Shown: positions 14,446 to 38,331 of the stretch, one piece after another | How positions within the stretch are numbered: the first letter of the stretch is position 1 | Layout: each line of letters begins with the position of its first letter | Sequence record: NC_048053.1 | Direction: 5' to 3' (one strand) | DNA: 64,000 nucleotides | Notes under the pieces: model-generated | The model's input: only the letters and a program-made list of their open reading frames with translations | What the model was told of the DNA's origin: nothing | Database searches by the model: none | Program-made: the position numbers and the translations under genes

Positions 14446-14478
14446 CTGTAAATAAGGGGTAAGGAAACTTACCCTTTT
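14446..14478 (+). promoter_or_regulatory. CTGTAAATA motif (candidate phage promoter) fused to hairpin/terminator
   Basis: CTGTAAATA then GGGTAAG-GAAA-CTTACCC-TTTT. Confidence 0.65.
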
Positions 14479-14517
14479 CTATTTGTGGTAGCTTTTTAAC
14501 TTTAATGGGGAAACCAT

Positions 14518-15096
14518 ATGACTTTCGAACCTGAGCACTTTCATTTCAGCCTTGCGCATGAGAAAAACTTCCTCGCATATTCCAGTATGCGTTTGATCGG
14601 TGCAACACTGACGAAAGAAAACTTCTTCGAGAAAGTTTTTCGTCCGGCAGGTGAAAAGCTGGATAGCGAGATCATGCAAATCTTCACCGATCTTCCCGGC
14701 ACGGAAGAAATGCACGCCAATATTGGGTTCGATGCCAATCGCGACTACGAAAAGGTGTTGCATGAAATTCAATTGGCGTATGAATATCATTACGACCTCT
14801 GGCGTCAAACGCACGAAGCATTAGAAAAAGTTGTTCTGAATGTGCTTTGCGCAGTGAGTGATAACAATGCTCATATGCGTTCGCCTCACTGGAAAATTCC
14901 GGACGATGTTGATTCTCGCATTTGTGTTTACGGCTGTCATTGTGGTTTCCTTGTACGACTTGCAGATCAATTCTTTGTGCGCCCTCGCCTACGCAAAGAG
15001 CTGCTCTCAAAAGATTATCCGCCAGCGATTCGTGTTCAGATTGCGGTATCTCCGAATCGCGATTTTAACTTTGCAACTCTACGCCGTGCATTCTAA
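14518..15096 (+). CDS. Hypothetical protein
   Basis: 192 aa ORF with GGGG SD. Confidence 0.75.
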   Translation: MTFEPEHFHFSLAHEKNFLAYSSMRLIGATLTKENFFEKVFRPAGEKLDSEIMQIFTDLPGTEEMHANIGFDANRDYEKVLHEIQLAYEYHYDLWRQTHEALEKVVLNVLCAVSDNNAHMRSPHWKIPDDVDSRICVYGCHCGFLVRLADQFFVRPRLRKELLSKDYPPAIRVQIAVSPNRDFNFATLRRAF

Positions 15097-15461
15097 TGAA
15101 AGAAATTCTTATCTCTCGCGAAAGAAGATCTGAAATGTTCAAACAACTTCTGGCACTTCAAACGCAATACTTCCTTGCGCGTAAATGGAAGTGGCGCGAA
15201 GGTTGGTGCGCTGGAGAGGAATGTGATGAATGGACGGATGAATCAGGCTCTATTATGTGGGCGTCTGTTCAGGATTATATTTTCTCACCAGCGAACATTA
15301 TAAACTTCATGGAGAAGCATGAAATCTCTATTGAGCATAACGGAAAAGAAAGTTACACGGCAATAACTAATACCGGGATTGTCGGTCACGGCATTTGTCA
15401 CCGTAGCGCCGTATTGACTGCAATGATAAATCACTACAGGAAAGAAAATGGAATCAATTAA
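15096..15461 (+). CDS. Hypothetical protein (weak NinX/DUF2591-like C-half)
   Basis: TAATG coupling; IINFMEKHEISI..SAVLTAMI pattern. Confidence 0.65.
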   Translation: MKEILISRERRSEMFKQLLALQTQYFLARKWKWREGWCAGEECDEWTDESGSIMWASVQDYIFSPANIINFMEKHEISIEHNGKESYTAITNTGIVGHGICHRSAVLTAMINHYRKENGIN

Positions 15462-15942
15462 TCTTCCGATCAAAGATCGTGTTCAGCATTATCCGTTCCT
15501 CGCGGCAGCGTTTAATTTGGCGAACATTTCTAAAGCGCGTCGTCGAGCGTGTGGCGCTGTTCTAGTGCGCAACATTAACGGCATTCCCACAATCATTAGC
15601 AGTGGCGTTAATGGCACTGAACCGAAAGAAGAAAATCTTTGTGAGACTCATGATCTCACTTTATCTTTACCGGGTACGGTTCACGCAGAAATTAATTGTG
15701 TGTCTGTTTTACGTCCTTCTTTGTTGGATACGGACATTCTCTATATCACGGATTCGCCGTGTGAATTCTGTCTGGAGTTTCTGAAAACAACAAATATCCG
15801 CACGGTTGTTTTCGCTCGTTGTTATCGCATTACAGAGCATATGGAAAAAGCGGAAGGCTTTCGCTTCATTCACATTCCGGAACAGGCAGTAATTGATTAT
15901 ATGACCAGTTCCGTGAACCGTATGGCGCAGGTTATTTCGTAA
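15448..15942 (+). CDS. cd: dCMP deaminase
   Basis: RRACGAVLV, SGVNG, HAE and SPCEFC zinc motifs. Confidence 0.92.
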   Translation: MESINLPIKDRVQHYPFLAAAFNLANISKARRRACGAVLVRNINGIPTIISSGVNGTEPKEENLCETHDLTLSLPGTVHAEINCVSVLRPSLLDTDILYITDSPCEFCLEFLKTTNIRTVVFARCYRITEHMEKAEGFRFIHIPEQAVIDYMTSSVNRMAQVIS

Positions 15943-15951
15943 GGCGATAAA

Positions 15952-16404
15952 ATGGAACAAGTCTACAAATGTCGAAACTGCAATCACATATATGATGGAA
16001 TTGTTAGTAGCTGTGATTGCAATAACGAACCGTTCAAATACACAACGTATTTGGCGATCCCAAAACCAACTTTGCGTAATCCAAAACTGATCGATCAATC
16101 GCTTATTTCTCCGGGCGTGTGGGTACGCAAAGGAACAACAATTTTTGCAGTGAATCCCAATAAGAAATTTATTGTAGGAACTAGTTCTTCTGAATGTGAC
16201 GATCCGGCGCAGGAAGCAGAAGCTGCAATTGCTAATGCGCGCGTAATGGGTGCAAGCAAATTAATGCTCGAAACTTTAATGGTTCTCCAATCGCATTTTC
16301 GTACACGCATTGCAGTTAATCCTGCTGCTGATGCGCCGCGTTCAATGCTGGAGTTGATCAATAACGCAATTCAGTACGCAACCGTTGATTCAGAACAGGA
16401 ATAA
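15952..16404 (+). CDS. Hypothetical protein with N-terminal Zn ribbon
   Basis: CRNC..CDC. Confidence 0.7.
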   Translation: MEQVYKCRNCNHIYDGIVSSCDCNNEPFKYTTYLAIPKPTLRNPKLIDQSLISPGVWVRKGTTIFAVNPNKKFIVGTSSSECDDPAQEAEAAIANARVMGASKLMLETLMVLQSHFRTRIAVNPAADAPRSMLELINNAIQYATVDSEQE

Positions 16405-16406
16405 AA

Positions 16407-17282
16407 ATGGACTATTATTTTTCACTCGAAGAACTAAGAACGTGGGCGCGAATCTGTCTGATCGTGATTGTGTTTGGCTCTCTCTTTTACTCAGCTTACA
16501 GCAACTATATCCGCAATAAGTATGAGAAGATCGCGCGTCGTATGTTTAATGTCGGCGAACTTGCGGCAGGGCAAGTGTGGCAGCACTACCGCAACAAACG
16601 TTTCTACACAATTCAAGTTGTGAGTAATGTAATTGCCAATGGCAAAGAGTGGCCTCTCACTATCGTATATATGACAGCGAAAGGTTATGCTGTTTATAGT
16701 CGTCCGGCACATGAATTTATTCGCAAGTTTAAATTGGTGGATGAAGAATCTAACGCACGCGAAACTCCGACGCAGAATCTTCTGGCGTTAATGTCATATG
16801 TGACTGGAAGAGTATCGTTGCCTGAACCGGGATCGGAGTGGATTCGCGAATACGGAGTGCCCACAGGAAAAATTAACGCATTAGGCCATCTGGAAATGCG
16901 TTTAATGAAAGAAAAGATTGTGGTCGATACCGTAACTAACCTCAATCAACCGTGTCCGTATGTGAACTATACAGATCAAAACGGTTCGAAGAAAACCATT
17001 ACTCTGCATCACTTCCGGCAAAGTTATGTAAAAGAACAAGTGATTACTGATCGTGTATCACATTGCATTCTAAGCAATCAAAATGTGGAAGCGTTGAAAG
17101 AAGCCACGCTTCGCGATGGTGATCGTGTAACTGTAAATCAGGTAGTAGATGACGAATTTATTGTTGTTGACTACTGCGGTATCTCTGCGAAACTCGAATT
17201 TAATTCCACTAAAGGTTTTTACGTGGGCGCAGAATATGTTATTAACGAAGGCTGTCTGACGATAGGGAAAAATGATGAGTAA
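16407..17282 (+). CDS. Membrane-anchored protein with DUF1653-like domain(s)
   Basis: N-terminal TM ICLIVIVFGSLFYSAY; GQVWQHYRNKRFY..IVY..YSRPAHEF. Confidence 0.7.
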   Translation: MDYYFSLEELRTWARICLIVIVFGSLFYSAYSNYIRNKYEKIARRMFNVGELAAGQVWQHYRNKRFYTIQVVSNVIANGKEWPLTIVYMTAKGYAVYSRPAHEFIRKFKLVDEESNARETPTQNLLALMSYVTGRVSLPEPGSEWIREYGVPTGKINALGHLEMRLMKEKIVVDTVTNLNQPCPYVNYTDQNGSKKTITLHHFRQSYVKEQVITDRVSHCILSNQNVEALKEATLRDGDRVTVNQVVDDEFIVVDYCGISAKLEFNSTKGFYVGAEYVINEGCLTIGKNDE

Positions 17283-18027
17283 TTATCCGCAACTGGATCT
17301 CACCAAAGAGCGTGATTTCGAAATGTATGCCTATGACAATTACGATTGTCTTTATATGGGGCGCGTCGATGCAATAAAAGAAGAAGGGCGTCCTGTAAGC
17401 GATCCTAAGCGTACAGAAGATCAATGGCGTACAATTCCCGGTTGCGTTATTCAACTCGCAAATACAGCAATGGCTTTTCCTGCGCCGCTTTCGAAAAAAG
17501 CAAATTGGGTTGCTGCGGTAGATGAAAGCTGCTGGTTCATGCGTGGTGAGACAAACATCAATACGCTCAATTCCAAAATTTGGGATGAGTGGGCTGATGA
17601 GTCTGGTGAGTGTGGCCCGATTTATGGTGAAATGTGGCGGCGTTGGCCTGACCTCAAAGCATTCTTCGATTACACGCAACCTACTGGCGTGTGTCCGTCC
17701 CCTGATGTTCTTCGCATACGCAAAGAAATTCTGCGTATGCGTGCTGCTGGATACAAAGAAACTTTAATGAACGATGGTCGCATTCTGTTCGAAGGTGAAA
17801 TCGATCAGTTGTTGGAAGCATTAATTGCAATCAAAGAGCGTTCACGCTCGCGTCGTATTCGTGTTCAGGCGTTCAATCCTTCTTATTTGCATATGCAGGG
17901 ATTACCGCCGTGCCATACTGGTTTTGAATTTAACGTGTTGCCTTCGACTCTGTATGAGCAAACGATCATGCGTGCGGCACACGGCGAAGCATTCGAAGAA
18001 ACTTTGCACGTCAGCGTGTTCCTGCGT
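17272..18027 (+). CDS. thyA: Thymidylate synthase, exon 1
   Basis: IWDEW, GPIYG, SRRI, catalytic PPCH, ends ...FLR. Confidence 0.92.
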
Positions 18028-19153
18028 TCACTACATTGAGCGCCATTGGGTAGTAATGCCCTTTGCAAACTCCATTAAAACGGGAACCTCTCGAAAGAGA
18101 CAATCCGTTGCTAAATTTCCAAAGAATGATAATTTCAAACGGTAGACCTAGAAACCTATCGGAGAAAATATCATGACTGCGTATGTGTACAGGCTTGTCC
18201 ATAGACCTACTGGAAAGTTTTATTTGGGATCGACTGACGATATAGATTACAGGAAATACCAACACCTGAACAATCTTGAGAAAGGCCGTCATCCTAATTG
18301 CAGACTTCAAAAACTATTCGATAAAAAGAATGGCAAGAATTTTGAGTGGGAAGTGTTCCCTGTCAAAAACAGAAAGGCAGCATTTGAGCACGAACAAAAG
18401 CTGTTGGCAAAATACCACGACAACAAACTTATGTTGAATATTGGAATGCACACTGTTGGCGGAGATAACCTTACTCGAAATCCACGTAGGAAAGAAATCA
18501 TTGAGAAGATCGGACGCGGTGCAAAAGGCGTTTGGGATAATCTTAGTGATGAACAATATCAGGAACGTGTCGCCTTAGTTCAAGGTGAAAACAATCCGAT
18601 GTATGGAAAGACTCACACGAAAAAGGTTAAGAAAAAACTTAGCGAATTCCACAAAGGGAATACTTATGCTCTAGGATGCAAGCGCTCCGAAGAGACTAAG
18701 AAAAAGTTAAGTGAGAGTGCATCGAAACGAACCGGAAAGAAAAATGCTTTCTACGGCAAGAATCATTCCGAAGAGGCCAAAGCGAGAATGCGCGAGGCAG
18801 CACTAGCGCGAGATCCTTTAGATAAAGCTCAAAGAAAAGATATCAGTGTGGATGGAAAAGTTTTTATTTCTCTTAACGAGGCTTCGCGTCAGTTAGGAAT
18901 TCCAGCACCAACTTTGAGTTACCGATGCAAAAGTAAAAACCCTAAATACGCAAATGTTTTCTATTTGGAATAAATGCCCAACGACTATCGAAAGCACGAT
19001 TAATTTCGGAAGCGAGTAGAGTAGGATGCAAGCTAATGGCATTCGAAATGTGGAGAGTCCTCGAAAGAGGATTGTGATATAGTCTGATCTGCATAGTGAT
19101 ATGCAGCGGTCGAAAGACGGCGAGGAAAGTTGCGCTTCCTTGTGAACATAATG
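18028..19153 (+). mobile_element. Group I self-splicing intron (1126 nt, IA2-like)
   Basis: P1 GCGU|UCA-cuacau-UGAGCGC with U.G at the splice site; Q CAATCCGTTGC; P7 GACTA/TAGTC; P3 CTCCA/TGGAG; terminal G 19153; splicing restores LRSSDTLLGLPFN. Confidence 0.93.
18173..18973 (+). CDS. Intron-encoded GIY-YIG homing endonuclease, I-BmoI/I-TevI-like
   Basis: YVYRL..FYLGST, conserved R/E/N, NUMOD3-type repeats (GENNPMYGKTH, KRSEETKKKLS, FYGKNHSEE), C-terminal EASRQL HTH. Confidence 0.93.
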   Translation: MTAYVYRLVHRPTGKFYLGSTDDIDYRKYQHLNNLEKGRHPNCRLQKLFDKKNGKNFEWEVFPVKNRKAAFEHEQKLLAKYHDNKLMLNIGMHTVGGDNLTRNPRRKEIIEKIGRGAKGVWDNLSDEQYQERVALVQGENNPMYGKTHTKKVKKKLSEFHKGNTYALGCKRSEETKKKLSESASKRTGKKNAFYGKNHSEEAKARMREAALARDPLDKAQRKDISVDGKVFISLNEASRQLGIPAPTLSYRCKSKNPKYANVFYLE

Positions 19154-19504
19154 TCAAGTGACACCCTATTAGGCTTGCCGTTTAATGTTATCGGCTACTG
19201 TTCTATCTTCCATTTGTTCGCAAAATATTGCGGCCTGAATATCGGTAGCTTTACGATTGACAGCACCAATACGCATGTTTATGAACATCACTGGACGGCG
19301 CTTGATAAGCAACGTGAACAATTCGAAGAACTGGTGGCAGAAGTTCGTAGCACTGGTAATCCGATGCAGTATCCGATCATGCGAATCGATCCGAAAATTT
19401 TTGCACTGGAACCGAAAGAACTTCTCGATTCAATCAGCGTAGAAATGTTCAATCTGGAAGGTTACAATCCGAAAGGTAAGATTACCGGGCGCGTAACCAA
19501 ATAA
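19154..19504 (+). CDS. thyA: Thymidylate synthase, exon 2
   Basis: SSDTLLGLPFN, THVYEHH; spliced CDS 368 aa. Confidence 0.92.
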   Translation, partial: SSDTLLGLPFNVIGYCSIFHLFAKYCGLNIGSFTIDSTNTHVYEHHWTALDKQREQFEELVAEVRSTGNPMQYPIMRIDPKIFALEPKELLDSISVEMFNLEGYNPKGKITGRVTK

Positions 19505-19509
19505 GATAT

Positions 19510-19531
19510 GGCGGCCTTGTGCCGCCTTTTT
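19510..19531 (+). terminator. Intrinsic terminator
   Basis: GGCGGC-CTTGT-GCCGCC-TTTTT. Confidence 0.8.
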
Positions 19532-19544
19532 CGTAGGAATCGCC

Positions 19545-20270
19545 ATGCCTATCATGCGTAATTGGTTTCACTTCGCGGCAGTACATCGTGATAATATTCG
19601 CGACGTGCGCATTCAGTTTGAATCACAAGAGGATGTAGATCACAACGAAATGTATCAACACAAAATCGGATCTCCGGTTGTGCTCGGTATAAGTCAAGGT
19701 GATAAAAATATTTCACATTTCATTGATGCGACTGTTCTCGCTGTGCGTTTCAGTGAAAGAGTTTGTTACGATATCGCTGTGCCTGTCGGTAACTCTGGCG
19801 TAATGGCAGTGATGAAAATGATTTCAGGAAGCAATTTACGCTCACCTGATGCTGTGTACGAACCGGAACCGGAACCAATTGTAGAAAAAATTTCTCCGCT
19901 TTCCCTCGTACCGAAAGAATCGGTAGAAACAAATGAAGCAGAAGAATTGAGTCCGATTGGGTGCGTGCGTTTTCCCGAAACTTATTTCGGCGAGCAAGTT
20001 TCTGATATGCCTCCACGGGCGCATTACGTGAAGGTGAAGAGTTTAAAAATTTCTGGCGCAATGCAGTCAGAAGAAAACCATTTTCAAATCGGAGACGAAG
20101 TTATTATTCCTAACTCTCCTAATCCCATGCGTGGATTAATCTACGCTATCAACGTTAGTCAGCATTTCTCATATGACATTGCAGTGCCTACGCGTGACGG
20201 CTACTATGCGATCCATCGTGATATTGATGCTGAATATATTGAAGCTGCAAACCCGACTGAGGAAGAGTAA
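19545..20270 (+). CDS. Hypothetical protein with two SH3-like repeats
   Basis: HKIGSPVVL..YDIAVP and FQIGDEVII..YDIAVP. Confidence 0.75.
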   Translation: MPIMRNWFHFAAVHRDNIRDVRIQFESQEDVDHNEMYQHKIGSPVVLGISQGDKNISHFIDATVLAVRFSERVCYDIAVPVGNSGVMAVMKMISGSNLRSPDAVYEPEPEPIVEKISPLSLVPKESVETNEAEELSPIGCVRFPETYFGEQVSDMPPRAHYVKVKSLKISGAMQSEENHFQIGDEVIIPNSPNPMRGLIYAINVSQHFSYDIAVPTRDGYYAIHRDIDAEYIEAANPTEEE

Positions 20271-20917
20271 TGTTTAAATATCCGTTCAAAGTGTTAGGCG
20301 TTGAGGCTGTTGGCAAACAAGGCCGTGCAGAAATCTATATCGAAAGTTTTGTTCCCGCAATAGGCTCAATCGTTCCTATCGATCTGCATCCTTTTGCTGA
20401 ACATGGTCTTTGGGTAGTTTCCGGTTTTGAAAACGGCGCTGTTCAAATTTCAACTGATCGCATTATGATTGTTGATCCGTTTGGTCTGGTGAAATATATC
20501 AATGCGGGTGTTTTCCAGAACGAAGATTCAGATTTGCGCAGCAATCTCGTCAGTAAATTTGTGAATGAATTCGTAAATGAACTGGCGCGTGCTGAAAAGA
20601 AATTTCCCAACTGGAACAAAGATGCTGTCTATGCCGCAAGCATTATGGGCGAGGAAAGCGGAGAAACTCTGCAAGCTGCTTTGGACTACCAACAAGCACC
20701 TGAGCATAGCGACGAACTGAAAGCGAATATTCTCGCCGAAGCTGTTCAAACTGGCGCAATGGCACTTCGACTTCTGATCAACGGTGATAGCTTTGAGCAT
20801 GATAGTAAATCACTCTCCGTTGCCGATGTTGATTCAATCCGAAAAATGTTGGAACTTGAAATATCTCCTACAGAGATCGTCGAGTTCCTCAAAGAACTGA
20901 TTCGAGAAAAAGGATGA
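20270..20917 (+). CDS. Protein with C-terminal MazG-like NTP pyrophosphatase domain
   Basis: ELARAEKKFP, MGEESGETLQA, EAVQTGAMALR. Confidence 0.65.
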   Translation: MFKYPFKVLGVEAVGKQGRAEIYIESFVPAIGSIVPIDLHPFAEHGLWVVSGFENGAVQISTDRIMIVDPFGLVKYINAGVFQNEDSDLRSNLVSKFVNEFVNELARAEKKFPNWNKDAVYAASIMGEESGETLQAALDYQQAPEHSDELKANILAEAVQTGAMALRLLINGDSFEHDSKSLSVADVDSIRKMLELEISPTEIVEFLKELIREKG

Positions 20918-20926
20918 TTCCGTATA

Positions 20927-21157
20927 ATGAAACTGCGGCGCAGATTTCTTTCTATCTTATTTTTTTATTGCCTACTTGTGTCTCTTGGCGCTGCTGTATC
21001 GTGGTGCGTATGTCGAGTATATAAAGTGATGCACGTTCACTTAAAAACGTTTGCGGGATGTAACGACAAAGAGGCACACATTGTTTTGGTCTTAACACTG
21101 GCGGCAATAGCTAATCTGCCTGTTCAGCTTTTGCATTTCGTACTCACGCTAATTTGA
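20927..21157 (+). CDS. Small membrane protein
   Basis: Two hydrophobic segments. Confidence 0.6.
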   Translation: MKLRRRFLSILFFYCLLVSLGAAVSWCVCRVYKVMHVHLKTFAGCNDKEAHIVLVLTLAAIANLPVQLLHFVLTLI

Positions 21158-21186
21158 AAGGGAAAGAATATTAGCGCGAGGTAAGC

Positions 21187-21498
21187 ATGTTCAAACCATT
21201 TAGATTTTTCGGACAGGAGAGAGCGCCGTCTAATGGATTTTATCACATACGAAATTTCGTGCGAGATATTCCATTAGATGCCGGATATGAGGAAATTGAA
21301 ATCGAGTTTACTCCGGCAGAAATGAAAGCAATGTATCGACCGTCACTCGGTATTGAGGTTTACGACATTGACGATCAGATTGAAATAACTTCTGTTGGAG
21401 TTCTCGGAAGCAAATTGATTGTTCGTTTACAGAGACGCACTGGAAAATTTGCGCACATCAAAGCGGTATGGGAAGAGAGGTATCTTTATGCTTCTTGA
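21187..21498 (+). CDS. Hypothetical protein
   Basis: GAGGT SD, 103 aa. Confidence 0.7.
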   Translation: MFKPFRFFGQERAPSNGFYHIRNFVRDIPLDAGYEEIEIEFTPAEMKAMYRPSLGIEVYDIDDQIEITSVGVLGSKLIVRLQRRTGKFAHIKAVWEERYLYAS

Positions 21499-21892
21499 TT
21501 CCGGAATGGTTGTAGAAGATTATACTGGAACGTATCTGGTGCTGCGCGGCATTCCTCCGCGTGATGGTTATGTTGTAGAAACAGAGGACGTTCCTTATAT
21601 AAAGTTGTCTTCATCTGGTCGTGGTCATATTTTGGAATATATTTATGTTCCCGAAAGAATGAGAGGGCACAAACTTTCATTGTCCTTACTGGAAGTTCTG
21701 TTTGAATATCAGGAGAAGAATAAAATCGACTTTCTGAAATTTGAATGTATTTGCAAACCCTTCTGGCGAAAAGTTTCGGCGAAATTTCCGAAGCGTGTTT
21801 TCTTCCCTCCAACTGTGCTGCAAAAAACCAACGTCGCTGTTGTGCGCCTGCCACACATAAGACCCTCCGCAATCAAGATTGGAAAACTGTAA
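21488..21892 (+). CDS. GNAT-fold acetyltransferase-like protein
   Basis: LEYIYVPERMRGHKLS motif A; ATG 21488 after GAGG. Confidence 0.6.
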   Translation: MLLDSGMVVEDYTGTYLVLRGIPPRDGYVVETEDVPYIKLSSSGRGHILEYIYVPERMRGHKLSLSLLEVLFEYQEKNKIDFLKFECICKPFWRKVSAKFPKRVFFPPTVLQKTNVAVVRLPHIRPSAIKIGKL

Positions 21893-21918
21893 ATATAAGG
21901 GGAAAGGATATCCCCTTA
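21887..21918 (+). promoter_or_regulatory. CTGTAAATA motif plus hairpin
   Basis: CTGTAAATA then TAAGGGGA-AAGGATA-TCCCCTTA. Confidence 0.6.
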
Positions 21919-21937
21919 ACTTACTGAGAGGCCAATC

Positions 21938-24887: not shown

Positions 24888-24920
24888 CTGTAAATAAGGG
24901 ATGTGTAGCGCATCCCTTTT
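24888..24920 (+). promoter_or_regulatory. CTGTAAATA motif fused to terminator hairpin
   Basis: CTGTAAATA then AGGGATGTG-TAG-CGCATCCCT-TTTGTTTT. Confidence 0.65.
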
Positions 24921-24935
24921 GTTTTGGAGGAAAGA

Positions 24936-27484: not shown

Positions 27485-27840
27485 AATCTTTAAAACTTAT
27501 GTTCTGCCTTTTGTTTGTTTCCTGTTTCAGCTTCGGAAGCACTATCGTAACTTCTGTCGGAAACAGTACATTTGTTTCGGATAGTAACGGAACAACGGTA
27601 TACAACAAGGTGGGAAATCAGATTTACGGAAGCGATGGAACATCTGTAAATAGGTATGGTAACACCACTATTCTGAATGACGGGCAAGGCAATTCCACCA
27701 TCTATAATAAAGTTGGTAACAGCACGTTAGGCAGCGACGGCACGCTGATTCAGAATGTAGGCGGCAGCACTTTTATTACTGACGGCAACGGTAAAACAAC
27801 TGTTTGCTCTCATGTAGGAAACTCAACCTTCTGCAATTAG
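27481..27840 (+). CDS. Secreted beta-hairpin repeat protein
   Basis: Signal peptide; six (V/Y)G(N/G)xT..DG repeats. Confidence 0.8.
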   Translation: MKSLKLMFCLLFVSCFSFGSTIVTSVGNSTFVSDSNGTTVYNKVGNQIYGSDGTSVNRYGNTTILNDGQGNSTIYNKVGNSTLGSDGTLIQNVGGSTFITDGNGKTTVCSHVGNSTFCN

Positions 27841-28863: not shown

Positions 28864-28923
28864 AAAACTAATAGTGCTATAGTTCAAAAGTTCTATAGCC
28901 TACTTCCTAGAAGGAATGAAGTC

Positions 28924-29565: not shown

Positions 29566-29713
29566 ACTGCTGCCTCATCAAAAAGAGGTTATGAAACTCA
29601 TAGGTAATTCCCAAACGTTGACCCTCGCGTTTGATCCGGGAAATACTTTTATGTGCCTTTCTATTCGTCCTAATAAGGAACAGAAAAATGTCAATGCAAA
29701 AGATCGTAATTGA
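29552..29713 (+). CDS. Small hypothetical protein
   Basis: TTG start after GGGTGG; 53 aa bridging two genes. Confidence 0.45.
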   Translation: MKQIELLPHQKEVMKLIGNSQTLTLAFDPGNTFMCLSIRPNKEQKNVNAKDRN

Positions 29714-30880: not shown

Positions 30881-30881
30881 A

Positions 30882-30922
30882 CTGTAAATAAAGGCTATCA
30901 GCATATTGTTGGTAGCCTTTTT
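30882..30922 (+). promoter_or_regulatory. CTGTAAATA motif fused to terminator hairpin
   Basis: CTGTAAATA overlapping AAAGGCTATCAGC-ATATT-GTTGGTAGCCTTT-TT. Confidence 0.65.
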
Positions 30923-30938
30923 CACTTTCTGGAGCGTA

Positions 30939-31532
30939 ATGATGGAACTTAATGAGATTGATCGTTGGCAACAATGCTTGCAAGAATTTGGCGGCATTCC
31001 GGTAGGCACGCGAGTTGATAGTGTTCCTATCAGCGTTGTAGATAATATCCGTCACTATCTTGAGCCGAAAGGTTCCCGCGTTTTTCTTTTGCCTTACTAC
31101 GGTCTTGAAATTGCGGTGGATGTGCAAGACAATGTTGATTTGAACATGGAGACGATCCCAAATCGTTTCATTACCGAAGGCGCTCGCGAAAAATTAAGCG
31201 TTGTAGATGAGTGTGGCACGCCCGATATTCATTACCTCGGAATAAAAGAAGTTATTCAGGAAATGATTCTGCAAATTCGTGCGTACTATGATTCTGTTCA
31301 GATGCACCGCTTTGATGATTTTCTCATTTATTCTGAAACTGAATTTGGTATGTGGGAATTGTGGTTCCACAAAAGCGGAGACTGCACTGTAACTCACGCG
31401 CCAAAATATATGGACTTCAATGCGTGGGTGGAAGAAAATTCTCAAACGTATATCGGCATTAGTGGCCTGAATGTCCCGAATGCAATCTATGAGATCGAAG
31501 GTACAGATCTCCTGCGTAAATTTGTGTGGTGA
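30939..31532 (+). CDS. Hypothetical protein
   Basis: ATG 30939 after GGAG. Confidence 0.7.
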   Translation: MMELNEIDRWQQCLQEFGGIPVGTRVDSVPISVVDNIRHYLEPKGSRVFLLPYYGLEIAVDVQDNVDLNMETIPNRFITEGAREKLSVVDECGTPDIHYLGIKEVIQEMILQIRAYYDSVQMHRFDDFLIYSETEFGMWELWFHKSGDCTVTHAPKYMDFNAWVEENSQTYIGISGLNVPNAIYEIEGTDLLRKFVW

Positions 31533-31756
31533 ACATGATTCGTTTTATTTTGTTTCTTCTTTACTGCGTGCCTGCGTATTTCTTCTCGTTCGGTTTAGGC
31601 CAGATTGTGATGGACATTTACGGTAACGTGTTCAAAGCAACTGGAGCACTAACTATCTGTTTCGCTTTTCTGATGATTATGTTTTGGGTTGTTACCCGAA
31701 TGATTCGCCGCAGAAAAGTTTATCTCAACGAATTTTTCTATACGGTGCGTGAATGA
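31526..31756 (+). CDS. Small two-TM membrane protein
   Basis: Two hydrophobic helices, basic C-tail. Confidence 0.7.
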   Translation: MVNMIRFILFLLYCVPAYFFSFGLGQIVMDIYGNVFKATGALTICFAFLMIMFWVVTRMIRRRKVYLNEFFYTVRE

Positions 31757-32022
31757 AAAAACTTCTGCTAATAGTTTTTCTTCTGGTTGGATGCAACGAT
31801 CCTAAAGATACGGTCTACACCAGTCAGATGTTAGTCGAACATAATTGCGTTGCTACGGGAGCATATCTCTTTCAGGAAGAATCAACGCAATTTAACGGGC
31901 AAATCACAAGTCAAAGACGAGTTAAGTATTACATCTACTCTTGCGAAGGCGGCAAGAAAATGTCTGAGACTTTGATTGTCGATCCTAACAAACAGATGCC
32001 TGAAATTGGAGAGGCACCATAG
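31753..32022 (+). CDS. Lipoprotein
   Basis: MKKLLLIVFLLVG-C lipobox. Confidence 0.8.
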   Translation: MKKLLLIVFLLVGCNDPKDTVYTSQMLVEHNCVATGAYLFQEESTQFNGQITSQRRVKYYIYSCEGGKKMSETLIVDPNKQMPEIGEAP

Positions 32023-32030
32023 GAATTCTT

Positions 32031-32462
32031 ATGAACGATATTCGTGTTGATCGTCCTATAGTTTTAGATTTAAATCCGTCTCGCAGAATCACTGTACGCA
32101 ATTGCTATCAGGCGTTGCAGCAACTCACTATTATCTATAATGCCGAAGTTGGTTACGATGATCCGCTTGATACTAACAATGATCGCTGCTTCGCGTACCA
32201 CACGGCTTTGGTTCCAGATAAAGATATGCGTCAATGGTGTGCGTTGATGCGTCAGTGGAGTGTTATTAATCCGGATACAAAAGAGCGTGTATGGGTAATG
32301 TATTTCGATATGCCCACCAACGTTACGTTTCAAACGTGCGCCGATCTCTGGAATCAGTATGTCAAACGCGCAACTGAATCTATCCCTTCGGTACGCATGG
32401 AAGAAATGTGTAAAGTCTTTCTTGAAGAGACAGATTTCATGGAAAGCTACAAGGGGGAGTAA
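32031..32462 (+). CDS. Hypothetical protein
   Basis: 143 aa ORF, AGGA SD. Confidence 0.7.
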   Translation: MNDIRVDRPIVLDLNPSRRITVRNCYQALQQLTIIYNAEVGYDDPLDTNNDRCFAYHTALVPDKDMRQWCALMRQWSVINPDTKERVWVMYFDMPTNVTFQTCADLWNQYVKRATESIPSVRMEEMCKVFLEETDFMESYKGE

Positions 32463-32469
32463 GAACTCT

Positions 32470-33309
32470 ATGTTGAAGAAAATAAAGTTTGCTGAATCTC
32501 TGCGTTACTTCAAAGAAGAACGAGAAGAACAACGTGCCGAAAAATTGGTTGGTCGTGAATTCAATTTTGAAAGCGGTCGTATCAATGTTCTGGTTGGTGA
32601 GAACGGCAGCGGCAAAAGCTCTTTACTGGAATCTTTGGCAAAGAAAATTCTGGCGTACAACTACGGACATACGCGCCTTGATGATCGCCTCATTCGTTTT
32701 AATGATGAATACTGGTCGAAGGAAGATCCGGATCGTTGGTACAGCGACGAAATCTATATGCCAGATGTTTCTCTTGAAACTGAATCGCCAATTTACGGCA
32801 TGTATATGTCTCCTGATTGGAAACCGTGCGACGCTCTAAATTGGGCGCACGCTCTTTGCTACGGTTTAGGCAAAGAGGCTACGGATCATTTCAAACGCAC
32901 CGAACAATTTTCTTCTGGTCAGGGCATGAGCAATGTCATAACGCATATTGCAATGGCGCTGAAAGAACGTAGCCCGGAAGTAAGTTTGGAAGAAGTGAAA
33001 TATCATATTCGCCCGGAAGATAATAACCATCTTGCGAAGCGAGCGAAGTTCTTACAAAAACTTCTGCCTGCTGCTGGAAGTAATATCGTTGCGATGTTTG
33101 ACGAACCTGAGCGTACTTTGGATTTAGGTTCGCAACTTGCTTTCTGGCAACTGATGAATGATATTGCTCAACGCGAGCATGTACAAATCGTTATTGCGTC
33201 GCATAGCTGTATTCCATTAATGTCGCCGGATAAATTCAATTTCATTGAAATGAATGAAGGCTACAAAGAAAGGTTGCTAAATACAACTGCAAATCTTTCT
33301 TTCAAATAG
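32470..33309 (+). CDS. ABC-type (SMC/AAA_21-like) ATPase
   Basis: Walker A GENGSGKS, signature SSGQG, Walker B AMFDEPE, H-loop IASHS. Confidence 0.88.
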   Translation: MLKKIKFAESLRYFKEEREEQRAEKLVGREFNFESGRINVLVGENGSGKSSLLESLAKKILAYNYGHTRLDDRLIRFNDEYWSKEDPDRWYSDEIYMPDVSLETESPIYGMYMSPDWKPCDALNWAHALCYGLGKEATDHFKRTEQFSSGQGMSNVITHIAMALKERSPEVSLEEVKYHIRPEDNNHLAKRAKFLQKLLPAAGSNIVAMFDEPERTLDLGSQLAFWQLMNDIAQREHVQIVIASHSCIPLMSPDKFNFIEMNEGYKERLLNTTANLSFK

Positions 33310-33320
33310 GAAGATTATTT

Positions 33321-33722
33321 ATGAAGGCTTTAAGTGTTAAGCAACCTTATGCGTGGTTACTGGCTAATGGTTTTAAAGATATTGAAAACCGTAGCTGGCA
33401 TACAAAGATGCGCGGGGATGTTTTAATTCATGCTTCAAAGGGAATGACTCGTAAAGAATACGCAGAAGCAAAAGAACTGTGTGATCAGTTGTCTGTAAAA
33501 ATTCCTGCGTTTGAAGATCTGGATCGCGGTTGTATTGTAGGCAGCATGGAGATTTTTGATTCAGTTAACGAAAGCGATTCGCCGTGGTATTTCGGGCAAG
33601 TAGGTTTCTGTGTGCGTAAAGCAAGGCCATGTAAACCCATTCCAATGAAAGGTAAATTGAATTTCTTCGAGACTGGAATTGCAAAAGGGGATCTAAAATG
33701 GATTCGCAGAACAACGAAATAA
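33321..33722 (+). CDS. ASCH domain protein
   Basis: ALSVKQPYA..GFKDIENR..LIHAS..GCIVG. Confidence 0.9.
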   Translation: MKALSVKQPYAWLLANGFKDIENRSWHTKMRGDVLIHASKGMTRKEYAEAKELCDQLSVKIPAFEDLDRGCIVGSMEIFDSVNESDSPWYFGQVGFCVRKARPCKPIPMKGKLNFFETGIAKGDLKWIRRTTK

Positions 33723-34531
33723 AAATGTCCGTTGGTACTATGACGGGCATGAAACTGAACTGTAGTCGCTTGCCTCCAGACCTTTGGAATTCTGTGCTTC
33801 GCGAACAACAACGTTTATCCCGTTTGTTGGATATGAATCGATCTCCTTATCGTGTTATATTTAGTGCGCTTCCGTGGAGTTGGAATTTTCCTTCGCATGA
33901 ACAGGCTGAGGGACGATTGAATCGCGGCATGTCTCCGTTTGTTCCTCTACCTGATTGCGAGCATGATCCTTTCTTTCAAGTTTTTGATACTCACGCTAAA
34001 GAACTTTGCAGCGCGATGGGTCTTGATCATAAACTGCTGGAAGAGTTTACTGAAACTACGGATCGTAACATGCTTAAAACAATGGGTGTAGATCCAGAAG
34101 TTCTCGCAGAACATTGCATACATCGTTCGAAAGTTAAAGTAGGGAACGATGACCGTTTATATTCATTAGCTCGCCGTCCGGGAAAAGCGACGCTGGCTAT
34201 GCAGCACCGTTCTGACACGCGAACTATTACAGCAAGCCTTCTTTATTCAGGACTCGATCCGGATAAAATTTTAATTATCGATCCGAAAATCGAACCTCAA
34301 CAAAGTTGGTCAAAAGAGCTTGAAGAGTTTCCGCGTACCTTCGAGGGAACCTTTACGGTTGAAAACAAAGAGGATTTAAAAAACTTTATTGAATCTCTTG
34401 CGCCAAAACTGACCATTCCTCACTATGCAGCGAAGCCGGAAATCAATTTATCTCCGCGTTCGAAACGTAAATCGTTGATTCGTGCATCGCGTAAACTAAA
34501 TAAACATGCGAGAAAAAATGGACGCAAATAA
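33698..34531 (+). CDS. Hypothetical protein with basic C-tail
   Basis: 277 aa ORF. Confidence 0.7.
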   Translation: MDSQNNEIKMSVGTMTGMKLNCSRLPPDLWNSVLREQQRLSRLLDMNRSPYRVIFSALPWSWNFPSHEQAEGRLNRGMSPFVPLPDCEHDPFFQVFDTHAKELCSAMGLDHKLLEEFTETTDRNMLKTMGVDPEVLAEHCIHRSKVKVGNDDRLYSLARRPGKATLAMQHRSDTRTITASLLYSGLDPDKILIIDPKIEPQQSWSKELEEFPRTFEGTFTVENKEDLKNFIESLAPKLTIPHYAAKPEINLSPRSKRKSLIRASRKLNKHARKNGRK

Positions 34532-35048
34532 TCTGATTGCCTTCCTTGCGATGTGGGCTATTTTCGGATCAACTTTCGCACTGCTTGATTTTATTGAAGC
34601 GCTGTATAAGAAGATTCGAAAGAAAAGCCATTTGAGTTGGATTCAAACTTTCGTGTATCCGGCTATGGTTATTATTCTGTGGCCTGTGGTGATAGTTACG
34701 TTAATTTTACAAGTGTGTTTTCCAAAAACGTTTGCGCGATTCCGCAAGTGGTTCGATTTTAAAACTCGCTTCTATCCGGTTCCGATATACAAAACCGAAG
34801 AGTTTGATCCTCGCCTTTTGAAATCAAAATTGTGTGAAGTGTCTGTTCTCGAATGGCAGAAGCCGGGTTATCAGTACGAAACGACTTTGGATCTTTATGT
34901 CTACCGTAACGATAAAACGGGAATGCTTAGAATAGCAGTTAACTATTCTGAATCGAGTGGCAAATTTAAATATGTGTCGCACTGGCAAACATGGATAGGA
35001 AAACACAATCTTTTCAACTCCAGATTAATAGAGGAACAAAATGAGTAA
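34518..35048 (+). CDS. Two-TM membrane protein
   Basis: Two N-terminal hydrophobic helices. Confidence 0.7.
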   Translation: MDANNLIAFLAMWAIFGSTFALLDFIEALYKKIRKKSHLSWIQTFVYPAMVIILWPVVIVTLILQVCFPKTFARFRKWFDFKTRFYPVPIYKTEEFDPRLLKSKLCEVSVLEWQKPGYQYETTLDLYVYRNDKTGMLRIAVNYSESSGKFKYVSHWQTWIGKHNLFNSRLIEEQNE

Positions 35049-35361
35049 ATGTCTTTCTCTCACTCAACTGCTCGATATTCGCAAAAAGATGATCTCGATT
35101 GTTGATGATCGTCGTATTAAACTTTCTGAAAAAGGAATGGAAGATCCTAACCAGACCAATTGGTCGATCAGTAAAGTTCCGACAAAAGTTAGCACTGCGT
35201 ATCAGGATATTGGATTCCTGTGTGACCATGTTTCACGTCTGGAATATCTTATTGAAATGCAGGACACCGACGAAGCTAACGAACTTTCGGAAGAACGTTC
35301 CAAAGAGTTGTTGGATTCTTTACCTCCGGAATTCCATGAGGAAACTGATGATAGCGAGTAA
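35041..35361 (+). CDS. Hypothetical protein
   Basis: GAGG SD. Confidence 0.7.
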   Translation: MSKCLSLTQLLDIRKKMISIVDDRRIKLSEKGMEDPNQTNWSISKVPTKVSTAYQDIGFLCDHVSRLEYLIEMQDTDEANELSEERSKELLDSLPPEFHEETDDSE

Positions 35362-35671
35362 AGGAATTAATCGTGCTCCTGAGCCTGCGAAGTTTGAAGA
35401 ACTGATTTATGGCGATGTTGATAATGCGTTTCGCCGTCTGACCAGTTTACTCGTGCGTGTATCTAAAAGGGAGAAACTGCATAGCATGACAGGCTTCATT
35501 TATTCCCGCGAAACGCTAAAAGGCACTCCTGCTCATTTGGTAACGTCGAAATTTACAGGAGACAATCAGCGTGTGATGCTGGATAAGGACGAGGGAATGT
35601 CTAAACTCCATTTCACAATAACGGCTAAACCAGACGGAACGATTACCTCGCATGTTGATCACTGGATTTAG
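35348..35671 (+). CDS. Hypothetical protein
   Basis: ATG 35348 after GAGG. Confidence 0.65.
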   Translation: MIASKGINRAPEPAKFEELIYGDVDNAFRRLTSLLVRVSKREKLHSMTGFIYSRETLKGTPAHLVTSKFTGDNQRVMLDKDEGMSKLHFTITAKPDGTITSHVDHWI

Positions 35672-36032
35672 ACGAACCGAAGTTGTGAGCATGAGGAACG
35701 GCAATACCAACTTCGATATTCGAATAGATCGTCAAAGTAAGTGGGGGAATCGTCATTACATGAATGACGATTCCCCTGCTGAAAGAGATCGAGTGTGTGA
35801 TGAACACGAAAAGGAATTGTGGGAAAAGATTCACGCCGGGGATATTTCTCTGAGTGAATTAGAAGAACTCTACGGAAAAAGATTAGGCTGTTGGTGTAAA
35901 CCTAAACGCTGTCACGGCGATGCGTTAGCTGAGGCTGCGGAATGGGCGCACCGATTAATGGTTATTCTGAGGCGACTTAGAAGGAAAAAGAATGCCAAAC
36001 GCAAGCGTATTAAAAAACAGAAAGTGTTGTAA
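35652..36032 (+). CDS. DUF4326 family protein
   Basis: IDRQSKWGN..LYGKRLGCWCKPKRCHGDAL; start uncertain. Confidence 0.85.
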   Translation: MLITGFRRTEVVSMRNGNTNFDIRIDRQSKWGNRHYMNDDSPAERDRVCDEHEKELWEKIHAGDISLSELEELYGKRLGCWCKPKRCHGDALAEAAEWAHRLMVILRRLRRKKNAKRKRIKKQKVL

Positions 36033-36207
36033 GTGTGGATGGCCTGTTGTATTTCTTCTATGCAACAAAGAGCTTATGACTACACCACCTTACAGCAATT
36101 TTGATTATTGGGAATACTGCGCCAACAAAACGTGCGAACATCACGAAGGGCAAGGTATTTATAGCGCTACAGGCAACGCTGATTTTGTTGAGGTAGAAAA
36201 TGACTAA
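35992..36207 (+). CDS. Small Zn-binding protein
   Basis: CCKC..YCANKTCEHH. Confidence 0.65.
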   Translation: MPNASVLKNRKCCKCGWPVVFLLCNKELMTTPPYSNFDYWEYCANKTCEHHEGQGIYSATGNADFVEVEND

Positions 36208-36445
36208 GAAGGCTCAACGCGAAATTAAAAGTATTACAGTACGTCCGGATAAAGAAATCACGGACGCATTCAATGAACTTTGCCGCGAAGTTGGTATTCC
36301 TCCTGCAACGTACATTCGCCGCTTCATGGAAAATTGTACGCGTGAAAATCGTCTTCCTATTGAGCACCTGCCTCAAGATATCGTTGACCGTATGCGCCGC
36401 GCCGTAACTGAGCATGACCGACTGAAATTTATCTTGGGAGAATAA
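36200..36445 (+). CDS. RelB/DinJ-like ribbon-helix-helix protein
   Basis: ITVRPDKEI..LCREVGIPPATYIRRFM..ENRLPIE matches RelB/DinJ pattern. Confidence 0.7.
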   Translation: MTKKAQREIKSITVRPDKEITDAFNELCREVGIPPATYIRRFMENCTRENRLPIEHLPQDIVDRMRRAVTEHDRLKFILGE

Positions 36446-36454
36446 CTGTAAACA
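36446..36454 (+). promoter_or_regulatory. Variant motif CTGTAAACA (candidate promoter)
   Basis: Directly after a stop codon, 28 nt upstream of next ATG, one mismatch to CTGTAAATA. Confidence 0.45.
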
Positions 36455-36482
36455 ATAAGTATCTCATAAAAGGAAGCAAAGA

Positions 36483-37067
36483 ATGAATCTGAATCCGGAA
36501 GAAAGCCGTCTGTATAGTGAAGCTGTTATTTTAGCGTGTCGCGCACATCACGGACAGTTTCGCAAATATACAGGCGAACCTTATGTGCTGCATCCAATCG
36601 AAGTAGCAGAAATTCTTCGCCGCCATGACAGAGACATTAAAGTTATTTGCGGCGGAGTGTTACATGATGTTGTTGAGGACACCGAAATCACAAGCGCAGT
36701 TATTCAAACAATGTTCGGAGAGGAAATCTCAAACATCGTTGAAGGCGTTACCAATGTTTCGGAAGATAAAAGTCTTCCTCGCCATGTTCGCTTTTGGCGT
36801 AACGTTAAACATCTTGCGCACGCTAGCGAGCAAAGTCAGGATGTTAAATGCGCCGACATTATCAGCAACTGCCGCAACTTTCGTTTAGGCAATGAAAGTT
36901 TCACTGCGCAGTATATGGCAGAGAAAAGTATTGTTATCGAACATCTTTACGAAGCCGATTCCGGTCTGATTATGGAAGCAAAGGATGCAATTGAAAAGAA
37001 TCTGTTTGGCATTCAGGCAGAATTTCAATCGTGTGTTTCTAAACTCTGGAAAAATAAAACGGAGTAG
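36483..37067 (+). CDS. HD-domain (p)ppGpp hydrolase (SAH/Mesh1-like)
   Basis: HHGQFRKYTGEPYVLHP, LHDVVEDT, VKCADIISN. Confidence 0.88.
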   Translation: MNLNPEESRLYSEAVILACRAHHGQFRKYTGEPYVLHPIEVAEILRRHDRDIKVICGGVLHDVVEDTEITSAVIQTMFGEEISNIVEGVTNVSEDKSLPRHVRFWRNVKHLAHASEQSQDVKCADIISNCRNFRLGNESFTAQYMAEKSIVIEHLYEADSGLIMEAKDAIEKNLFGIQAEFQSCVSKLWKNKTE

Positions 37068-37070
37068 CGT

Positions 37071-37466
37071 ATGTTTCAGCGCTTCGGTATCGATCAGCAC
37101 ACAACGCTGCAAAGAATGAAAAAGCGTGCAAGGCGTAACGCTCTCTTTGTTCTGTCTCAAGGCAAAAAGGAATGCGCTCTTTCCGCTTACATCTATTCCC
37201 ACGAAATCGAAGCGAATACATTCGCGCTCGCTTTTGAGGAAATCAAGCCTCAAACACTAAACTCAATTCTGCTGATTGAAGCAGAAGTTCTTAATTTTGT
37301 GCGTAAGAACGATAGAGTGTTCGAAATCGTGGATGGCGTTGAAATTCAAATGGGAAAATTCAATCCTAAAGTTTCGCGCTTCTTGGGATGTAAAGACTTA
37401 CCGCCAAATAACGTGGTATCTCTGGAGAAAACTAATGGAAGGAAAATTGAAGCGGATATTGGATGA
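37071..37466 (+). CDS. Hypothetical protein
   Basis: GGAG SD. Confidence 0.7.
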   Translation: MFQRFGIDQHTTLQRMKKRARRNALFVLSQGKKECALSAYIYSHEIEANTFALAFEEIKPQTLNSILLIEAEVLNFVRKNDRVFEIVDGVEIQMGKFNPKVSRFLGCKDLPPNNVVSLEKTNGRKIEADIG

Positions 37467-37665
37467 GGTTCGAAAGACTCACAATGTCGTTGAGGTTGAT
37501 TGCTTTACCGAAGTGCGTGTTCCTCCTGCCTGCAAAATCTTTTTCATGTGCGGCGGTATCGGACAAAAACATTTCTATGGGAAGGCGTTTCTGAAACAGA
37601 TCGCCAAATATAAAAATCTCGTCGTACATGTGAACGGCGACAACTGTTCATATATAGCGTACTGA
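37435..37665 (+). CDS. Hypothetical protein
   Basis: ATG 37435 after GGAG. Confidence 0.6.
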   Translation: MEGKLKRILDEVRKTHNVVEVDCFTEVRVPPACKIFFMCGGIGQKHFYGKAFLKQIAKYKNLVVHVNGDNCSYIAY

Positions 37666-37672
37666 GGTTATC

Positions 37673-38134
37673 ATGGAAGCAAGACTCGTTTATAATAAGG
37701 TTCGTTCTGGATCTGAGTATGACGGTGCAAATCTCGTTGTTCGCGCATACATGCAGCAAAGTTCGTTTGGCAATCAAGCGTTGCTTTATGCTGATGTTAT
37801 CTACACCGAAAATTGTCGCCGGGTAGTCAAACAATTCACTAATACCAATCCCATTCGACTTGCGGAAGAGGTTGCAGATTTTGCAAATGACCGTATGCTC
37901 TCAAGCGACGTTATTTATTGCAGTAATGATTTACCGGATCACACACGCAGTCAGGCCGATATTGCCAATCGTTTCAAGCTGGCGTTCTGCGCAGAGATAG
38001 AAGCGATCACGGACGAAGACCGACGCATTCGTGAGGCACGCGAAAAAGATAATGAGCGTCATGAAAAAATTCTCGCTCCGTATCGTGATCGTAAAATTGA
38101 AGAGGCGAAGCAGAAAATCTTCGGAAACAAATGA
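37673..38134 (+). CDS. Hypothetical protein
   Basis: GAGGT SD. Confidence 0.75.
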   Translation: MEARLVYNKVRSGSEYDGANLVVRAYMQQSSFGNQALLYADVIYTENCRRVVKQFTNTNPIRLAEEVADFANDRMLSSDVIYCSNDLPDHTRSQADIANRFKLAFCAEIEAITDEDRRIREAREKDNERHEKILAPYRDRKIEEAKQKIFGNK

Positions 38135-38331
38135 CAGACAAAATTGTAGTTATTGGTTTGGCTGGAATGCCTGTAGGGAAAAAACTTCTTGATAGCTTAT
38201 CTCAAGTTGCAGTTATCCCTGTTGAAACGCCACCTTCTTATTTCGATAACCGCCACAATATTCCTAATCCGAAGCGGAATTTTAAATCTGTAAATAGAGT
38301 TCCACAAAGGATAAAACGGGGTAGACGATGA
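38131..38331 (+). CDS. Small protein with basic C-tail
   Basis: ATGA overlaps at both ends. Confidence 0.65.
   Translation: MTDKIVVIGLAGMPVGKKLLDSLSQVAVIPVETPPSYFDNRHNIPNPKRNFKSVNRVPQRIKRGRR

Follow-up and report, generated by a model that had tools for sequence, protein, structure and literature searches.

Motif copies and hairpins in the window

The window analyzed here is the whole stretch of 64,000 nucleotides (nt) formed by bases 1-64000 of the Dickeya jumbo phage vB_DsoM_JA29 (JA29), a member of the genus Salmondvirus with a genome of 253,323 base pairs (bp), and its sequence is identical to that part of NC_048053.1. The genes of JA29 lie in three strand stretches, on the plus strand from 1 to 41.5 kb, on the minus strand from 41.5 to 175.7 kb and on the plus strand again from 175.7 to 253 kb, which on the circular map amount to one plus arm and one minus arm. 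Our subject is a nine-nucleotide word, CTGTAAATA, found mostly between genes and in places fused to a terminator-like hairpin. We find six exact copies in the window, all on the plus strand (Table 1), compared with a mean of 0.39 copies in 100 shuffles of the window, none of which reached six; an earlier note on this DNA had listed the same six copies as exceeding chance. Two variants that it also listed, CTGTAAACA at 36446 and the minus-strand CTGTAAGTA at 51228-51220, are likewise present.

Four of the copies, according to the same note, sit at or just after a stop codon and are each followed by a hairpin, in three cases with a T-tract, and both the annotation and our folding bear this out. 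In these four fusions the hairpin begins -1 to +1 nt from the word, and the hairpins at 14454-14485, 24896-24928 and 30890-30930 have the features of intrinsic terminators, i.e., a G+C-rich stem-loop, a U-tract and a location at a gene end. The copy at 27644, which lies inside a gene, is probably weak or a chance occurrence. The copy at 38288 lies in the 3′ end of an unannotated open reading frame of 66 amino acids (38131-38331, plus strand) that overlaps the gp066 start (ATGA), and syntenic relatives have a called gene at the place of this reading frame (L021:18584-18814). Where the plus and minus arms converge, a perfect bidirectional terminator hairpin, AAAGGGGAAGCC...GGCCTCCCCTTT, occupies 41498-41525 (-17 kcal/mol on one strand, -21 kcal/mol on the other). 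An Rfam scan of the window returned no family at gathering score.

Table 1. Putative promoter words and hairpins in the window and, in the last two rows, elsewhere in the JA29 genome
Feature	Position	Strand	Details
CTGTAAATA, putative promoter core	14446-14454	+	1 nt past gp019 stop (gp019 ends at 14444); 63 nt before gp020 ATG (14518); predicted start ~14461
Terminator-like hairpin with T-tract	14454-14485 (stem 14454-14477)	+	-13.6 kcal/mol, z -3.2; first base shared with motif
CTAATTT	21149-21155	+	
CTGTAAATA, putative promoter core	21887-21895	+	own TAA (21890-21892) is gp031 stop; 42 nt before gp032 ATG (21938); predicted start ~21902
Hairpin without T-tract	21896-21918	+	-11.2 kcal/mol, z -2.2
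CTGTAAATA, putative promoter core	24888-24896	+	1 nt past gp035 stop (24886); 39 nt before gp036 ATG (24936); predicted start ~24903
Terminator-like hairpin with T-tract	24896-24928 (stem 24896-24918)	+	-13.7 kcal/mol, z -3.6
CTGTAAATA, intragenic copy	27644-27652	+	within gp043; lacks upstream AA, T/purine signature and hairpin
CTGTAAATA, putative promoter core	30882-30890	+	1 nt past gp049 stop (30880); 51 nt before gp050 ATG (30942); predicted start ~30897
Terminator-like hairpin with T-tract	30890-30930 (stem 30890-30920, 14 bp)	+	-18.3 kcal/mol, z -6.8
CTGTAAACA, variant	36446-36454	+	directly after gp061 stop; 28 nt before gp062 ATG; no hairpin; T/A at +14/+15
CTGTAAATA	38288-38296	+	31 nt before gp066 ATG (38328); no hairpin
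CTAATTT	51209-51203	-	
CTGTAAGTA, variant	51220-51228	-	11 nt upstream of CTAATTT at 51209-51203
Terminator hairpin with T-tract	58494-58472	-	after CTGTAATAC; -14.0 kcal/mol, z -3.8
CTGTAATAC, degenerate copy	58495-58503	-	own TAA is gp095 stop; terminator directly after, before gp094
CTAATTT elsewhere	e.g. 68.6, 76.4, 95.8, 112.4, 146.6, 159.8, 165.7 kb	-	
Third motif	200158, 212892, 220527, 224501, 232022, 233728, 245217	+	

Distribution of the motif in the JA29 genome

The earlier note had proposed a scan of the whole genome for the motif, and such a scan reveals a clear enrichment, with 19 exact copies compared with approximately 1.4 expected from first-order Markov simulations. All 19 copies run in the sense direction of their arm (15 plus-strand and 4 minus-strand copies), and 17 of the 19 are intergenic or overlap a stop codon, with the motif's own TAA serving as the stop codon in seven. 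An annotation-free k-mer test, which compared intergenic with genomic sense-strand counts, returned CTGTAAATA and its extensions as the top intergenic words of JA29 (16 of 19 intergenic, p ~2e-16).

The motif precedes start codons by 27-40 nt, and by 39-63 nt if a hairpin lies between the two. Among the genes that follow it are one for a NAD-dependent DNA ligase, two for DNA polymerase, and those for a recombination endonuclease, a clamp loader (annotated as gp194), a primase, a sigma factor, SSB and UvsE, as well as blocks of small accessory genes. At 243086-243219 (plus strand), before gp309, four copies form a tandem array, three of them at 27-nt spacing, and three further copies follow the topoisomerase gene at 249072-249148 (plus strand), two of these being within a long hairpin, GGGATCTGT...ACAGATCCC, with a T-tract.

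Extended consensus and predicted transcript start

We built a sequence logo from 39 intergenic or gene-end sense copies of the core CTGTAAA, with 43 intragenic or antisense copies as controls. The logo reads a-A-A-W-CTGTAAA-t-a, followed by five C-poor bases, a T at +14 and a purine at +15. Positions +9 to +16 are depleted in C (7% in the 39 sites vs 20% in controls), the T at +14 is present in 22 of 39 sites compared with 5 of 43 controls, and the purine at +15 in 35 of 39 sites compared with 21 of 43 controls. Information between -50 and -5 of the 39-site logo is at noise level, and we therefore see no -35 box. In the Dickeya phage AD1, one copy is separated from the ATG by just 19 nt, which must also hold the ribosome site, so that the start would lie at most about 8 nt past the word. 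Taken with the T/purine signature, this copy suggests that the transcript likely starts at approximately the seventh nucleotide after the 9-mer.

The same anatomy bears on an RNA-level reading, in which CUGUAAAUA would be the cleavage site of a host or phage endoribonuclease, and the hairpin would protect the new 3′ or 5′ end. RNase E sites are usually AU-rich and single-stranded, which the word resembles, and the motif is always found on the transcribed strand and at gene boundaries, often beside a stable hairpin. However, many copies are located just past strong terminators, where little RNA would arrive, an upstream A-tract combined with a T/purine at a fixed distance is the anatomy of a promoter, the distance to the start codon is constant, and tandem arrays occur upstream of single genes; the GenBank record of Pseudomonas phage Lu11 moreover annotates the motif as a promoter. 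Altogether we regard cleavage at the word as very unlikely.

A site bound by a phage activator or repressor, as opposed to a recognition element for polymerase, fits poorly with a word that has no symmetry, is oriented like its gene at every site and lies where a -10 element must be. No second promoter-like element occurs between the word and the start codon, where as few as 19-28 nt are left. The word is nevertheless short, conserved and intergenic, as a regulator site would be, it occurs in tandem copies (243086-243211 and 249072-249140), and some unusual activation would be needed in any case given that we see no canonical sigma-70 promoters; on balance we find such a site most improbable.

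Five further candidates were rejected. The word does not fit a sigma-70 extended -10 element, in that its TG is wrongly spaced and TAAATA lacks the T at -7, nor does it fit a -35-like box, being only 19-40 nt before start codons. Copies past terminators and the conserved CTG and AAW are not explained by a multi-frame stop signal, copies split from the ribosome site by a terminator do not fit a translational enhancer, and the mostly unrelated hairpin sequences speak against a repeated mobile element.

Conservation in related phages

The motif is conserved well beyond JA29. In JA29 and in phages of three other genera, Erwinia phage Y3, Dickeya phage AD1 and Yersinia phage fHe-Yen9-02, the sigma factors of which are ~71% identical, CTGTAAATA is located exactly 32 nt before the ATG of the sigma gene, with a diverged spacer. 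All three of these phages also have aaaCTGTAAAC before SSB and CTGTAAATA before the primase gene, and in the AD1 equivalent of the window arm all 15 copies of CTGTAAA are on the plus strand. In PaBG, a one-base variant (CTGTCAATA / aaaaCTGTCAATA) is found before SSB. A search of IMG/VR with two proteins of the window gave matches only from JA29 and JA11.

Together with the enrichment, the co-orientation with genes, the fixed distance to the start codon, the T/purine signature and the Lu11 annotation, this conservation across genera upholds the earlier note's reading of the motif as a phage-specific, single, -10-like promoter element. We consider it very probable that CTGTAAATA is the phage's own one-element promoter for replication and accessory genes, and the predicted promoter type is common to the Salmondvirus JA29 and to the wider group of jumbo phages that includes Lu11, PaBG, Y3 and AD1.

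Closer to JA29, five of the six window copies are identical in JA13 and JA33 (~89% DNA identity), and the copy at 38288, which is CTGTAAACA in both, is conserved in the metagenomic relatives L021, L022 and L024. Over a whole cassette, from the word through the hairpin to the leader, JA13 and JA33 match JA29 at 100%, compared with 89-94% in the flanking coding sequence; for the 14446 cassette, the figures are 100% in both phages and ~89% for the flanks. The 36446 variant is kept in JA33 and lost in JA13, where one gene replacement ends beside this copy; other indels do not coincide with cassettes. In this replacement (window 36200-36454 compared with JA13 35155-36198), a small upstream gene is swapped for an unrelated 1044-nt gene, with the breakpoint between the position of the 36446 motif and the ribosome site of the next gene.

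The three metagenomic relatives are syntenic with window 21-41 kb, and their gp050 homologues are 46-48% identical to that of JA29. All three have the fused motif and hairpin at the junctions orthologous to gp031/032, gp035/036 and gp049/050. The motif and stem are kept at gp031/032; the stem at gp035/036 differs only by a G-C to G-T change, with additional changes in the loop; and the hairpin at gp049/050 is in the same place as that of JA29 but unrelated to it. This last hairpin matches the JA29 gp230/231 cassette (195287) instead, being near-identical over ~45 nt that take in the T-tract and the ribosome site. Two more relatives, L025 and L026, have the same hairpin at the gp230/231 junction, where a CT to TC swap keeps both pairs, and hairpin changes among the relatives in general preserve pairing. 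The conservation at three junctions and the recurrence at a non-orthologous junction suggest that selection maintains the architecture in this clade and that one cassette or more was copied from junction to junction. In L025 (2955-2963) and L026, the motif ahead of the conserved gp230/231 hairpin is GTGTAAATA, with the first C replaced by G, and position 1 of the motif is therefore not invariant in the wider clade.

Predicted promoter classes and the phage sigma factor

The second enriched intergenic word of JA29 is CTAATTT(T), with 12 of its 17 sense copies being intergenic. It is located 23-37 nt before the starts of virion and lysis genes, mostly just after a terminator, and precedes, for example, the genes for the tail sheath, a PAAR protein and the endolysin, a baseplate-region gene, and the gene following the head-tail connector. 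CTAATTT is also found before the gp204 orthologue in AD1 and Y3. We class it as a candidate late promoter, and as the promoter of gp084 it is more likely than the CTGTAAGTA variant upstream of it. A third motif, CTCTGCAAA-N5-(G)TGTCCAAAAT, occurs at seven intergenic sites, 50-126 nt before starts, in the 200-245 kb part of the plus arm; read as the reverse complement, it shows GG-N10-GC, the spacing known from sigma-54 promoters, and a -24 box of TGGACA, but in antisense orientation.

Strong sigma-70 consensus promoters, with a cut-off of at least 10 of 12 matches, are few in JA29 and almost all inside genes, with none found in the intergenic regions, and JA29 thus seems to lack canonical early promoters. 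Since CTGTAAATA precedes replication, recombination and accessory genes and not virion genes, it looks like a middle promoter rather than a late one. Judging from gene functions, the temporal programme looks like one with CTGTAAATA as the middle class and CTAATTT as the late class.

No phage RNA polymerase is annotated in the JA29 genome, and the motif is presumably read by the host core RNA polymerase together with a phage-encoded specificity factor, for which gp222 is the only recognizable candidate. The gp222 gene (genome 186806-187843) is the sole annotated sigma gene, and its product matches PHROG 17569, "sigma factor" (3e-139). The gp222 family profile aligns to SigA region 2 (residues 156-233, E 0.013), and some homologues carry PF04542 (Sigma70_r2); region 4 gave no sequence match. 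In a model of the homologue P0001 (98% identical), the N-terminal domain is helical, the helices of region 2 are present, and a disordered linker leads to three helices at the C-terminus (290-341). A search with the gp222 family profile found no paralogous second sigma factor. The gp55-like sigma factor anticipated in the earlier note was not found: a phmmer search with T4 gp55 against all JA29 open reading frames gave nothing below E = 1, and hhalign of the gp222 family against gp55 gave a probability of 1.8%, placing gp222 in a different lineage of the sigma-70 family. With two phage-specific motifs and one visible sigma factor, gp222 may read either CTGTAAATA or CTAATTT.

Arrangement and possible function of the fused hairpins

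A strong hairpin lies within -1 to +3 nt of the word in 6 of the 19 exact copies (14446, 21887, 24888, 30882, 195287 and 241663), and the hairpin sequences mostly differ between the fused sites. The hairpin is not an integral part of the element: about two thirds of the copies lack a hairpin, and in the minus arm the order is the reverse one, with the classical sequence of terminator and then motif at 136492, 150233, 163651 and 166981. CTAATTT is followed by a hairpin in none of 12 copies. The minus arm also contains a family of near-identical terminators, AAA(A/T)GGGTGGC-loop-GCTGCCC(A/T)TTT (e.g., at 125.5, 152.3, 159.8, 163.7 and 165.7 kb), with CTAATTT or CTGTAAA 12-50 nt after, which is also present in Y3, AD1 and fHe-Yen9-02; each of these terminators and the word after it form a conserved terminator-then-promoter cassette, nearer to the classical PeSLs of T4-type phages.

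In each of the four fused copies of the window, the predicted start lies within the hairpin's 5′ arm, 7, 6, 7 and 7 nt into arms of 10, 8, 10 and 14 nt, respectively, with 2-7 nt of the arm left. That transcription starts inside the stem agrees with this geometry, and we give it an even chance; the promoter reading and a start inside the stem, taken as one proposal, we rate somewhat above even. Under this proposal, the genes served by the CTGTAAATA promoter would be those for replication, recombination and nucleotide metabolism, the accessory genes and the phage's own sigma gene, and the hairpins would act on the transcription unit upstream, as intrinsic terminators of the ordinary kind or as attenuators. 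The JA-type phages have, in their accessory arm, the word on the upstream stop codon or 1 nt past it, with the terminator-like hairpin straight after. RNA arriving from upstream would fold the complete stem and terminate; RNA begun at the motif would be without most of the 5′ arm, including the G+C-rich base of the stem by the U-tract, and would continue into the next gene block. A fuller version, which we put forward tentatively and hold to be somewhat short of even, is a portable stop-and-restart cassette of 45-60 bp, with its start inside the 5′ arm of a terminator, copied between junctions and operating within a three-class promoter programme with no canonical sigma-70 promoters.

The alternative that bears most directly on a start inside the stem is that the promoter starts at or before the base of the hairpin, resulting in partial termination that a phage antiterminator could relieve, or that the adjacency merely reflects the packing of signals into 45-70 nt. 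Intergenic regions are short and rich in hairpins, and motif-then-hairpin and hairpin-then-motif orders are both found. However, 4 of the 6 fused sites keep the T/purine at +14/+15, by which the start would fall midway along the 5′ arm; the stem never begins outside -1 to +3 nt from the word; and relatives with 47% protein identity have this geometry at three junctions, including one where a different hairpin sequence has taken over. Partial termination or simple packing is on these grounds unlikely.

Several observations, some of which favor this alternative, weigh against a start inside the stem or against the promoter reading as a whole. The adjacency of hairpins is only modestly over background, with 6 of the 17 intergenic exact copies having an adjoining strong hairpin compared with 7.2% of control intergenic positions, an approximately five-fold difference, and part of it may come from the tight packing of signals around stop codons. 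Neither in JA29 nor in its relatives does a U-tract follow the hairpin at 21896-21918, and the AD1 and Y3 regions that we read contain no direct fusions of motif and hairpin; the T/purine signature is also weaker in these two phages. Several terminators in the window (e.g., 19510-19526) precede genes without a restart motif, so that read-through, or antitermination, must also occur. The location of the gp222 gene behind CTGTAAATA fits a cascade, in which gp222 would read CTAATTT, as well as it fits autoregulation. We infer promoter activity, the site of initiation, how efficiently the hairpins terminate and which factor reads the word, working from what the DNA displays directly, i.e., enrichment, orientation, position, logo, conservation, hairpin stability and geometry.

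A split thymidylate synthase gene

Elsewhere in the window, thymidylate synthase (17275-19504) is annotated as two pieces, gp025 and gp027, separated by gp026 (18173-18973), which encodes a GIY-YIG homing endonuclease. The gene is uninterrupted in JA11, JA13 and JA33, and the split looks like an intron or a homing-endonuclease insertion, as in T4 td.

Significance and comparison with known systems

These predictions supply a promoter word with a start site, a candidate late promoter and a set of promoter-terminator junctions for a group of phages comprising Salmondvirus, Alexandravirus, Sasquatchvirus, Lu11 and PaBG, some of which are considered for Dickeya/Erwinia biocontrol, and they allow direct tests of the temporal programme and of what the conserved phage sigma factor does. 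If initiation inside a terminator stem is true, the cassette would be a very compact natural insulator and a design idea for synthetic operons, and the PeSL concept would extend beyond T4-type phages.

A literature search on the word CTGTAAATA itself returned nothing relevant, neither the Day 2018 paper nor the PaBG paper analyzes promoters, and we found no transcript mapping for any member of the JA29/Lu11 group. The closest precedent is the Pseudomonas phage Lu11, reportedly described by Adriaenssens et al. in the Journal of Virology in 2012 (86:6369), which has 51% G+C and a sigma factor 35% identical to gp222. Its GenBank record (JQ768459.1) annotates 16-nt features as "putative middle/late promoter", and all five that we read begin with CTGTAAAT, preceded by aaaa or aata; they are found, for example, at the SSB position (the gene after the sigma gene) and before thymidylate synthase. 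Core word, sites and phage group are thus common to Lu11 and JA29, and because the Lu11 record already annotates it, the promoter reading is not new for the group, although the JA phage paper does not propose it. Those of Lu11 were predicted purely in silico, with no hairpin link annotated, and its genome has many extra copies inside genes; fused promoter-hairpin cassettes of the JA type were not seen in the Lu11 regions that we read.

The earlier note had likened the motif to the late promoters of T4. The T4 late promoter, TATAAATA, is read by gp55/gp33/gp45. It shares with the JA29 motif the design of a single, A/T-rich, -10-like element with TAAATA and no -35 box, and both T4 and JA29 are large virulent myoviruses that use host polymerase. 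Position 2 is a G in the JA29 motif, however, and the preceding C and AAW are required. Genome-wide, TATAAATA is present in 6 + 5 copies with no strand or position bias and is not enriched, the enriched word being (AAW)CTGTAAATA, and the virion genes carry CTAATTT instead. With no gp55 homologue detected either, the analogy is limited to the single-element design and fails on the defining tests of a gp55 system.

A further likeness is that to the gp36-dependent middle/late promoters of phage phiEco32, in which transcription starts 6-8 bp past a single tAATGTAtA element (PMC8948821). As in JA29, this is a single element of ~9 bp with a TGTA core and no -35 box; phiEco32 combines the host core polymerase with a phage sigma factor (PMC8948821), and its start spacing matches the T/purine signature of JA29. 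The phiEco32 promoters have a different word, are read by a sigma factor of an unrelated lineage and were mapped experimentally, whereas those of JA29 are predicted from its genome.

The PeSL cassettes of T4-type phages combine a promoter with a stem-loop terminator, isolate accessory genes and mediate their shuffling; their promoters are early ones of the sigma-70 type with -35 and -10 boxes, and the stem-loop is located upstream of these, between them or over the -35 or -10 box (PMC2839356, PMC4122927). The JA29 cassettes are alike in being compact, intergenic and placed between small accessory genes, and the finding of one cassette at a non-orthologous junction suggests that they too are portable. 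A motif directly ahead of a terminator is a compact arrangement and not a new kind of signal. What sets the fused cassette apart from PeSLs is that its promoter appears to be a phage-specific single element, with the stem-loop, which begins between the last base of the word and 3 nt past it, extending over the presumed start.

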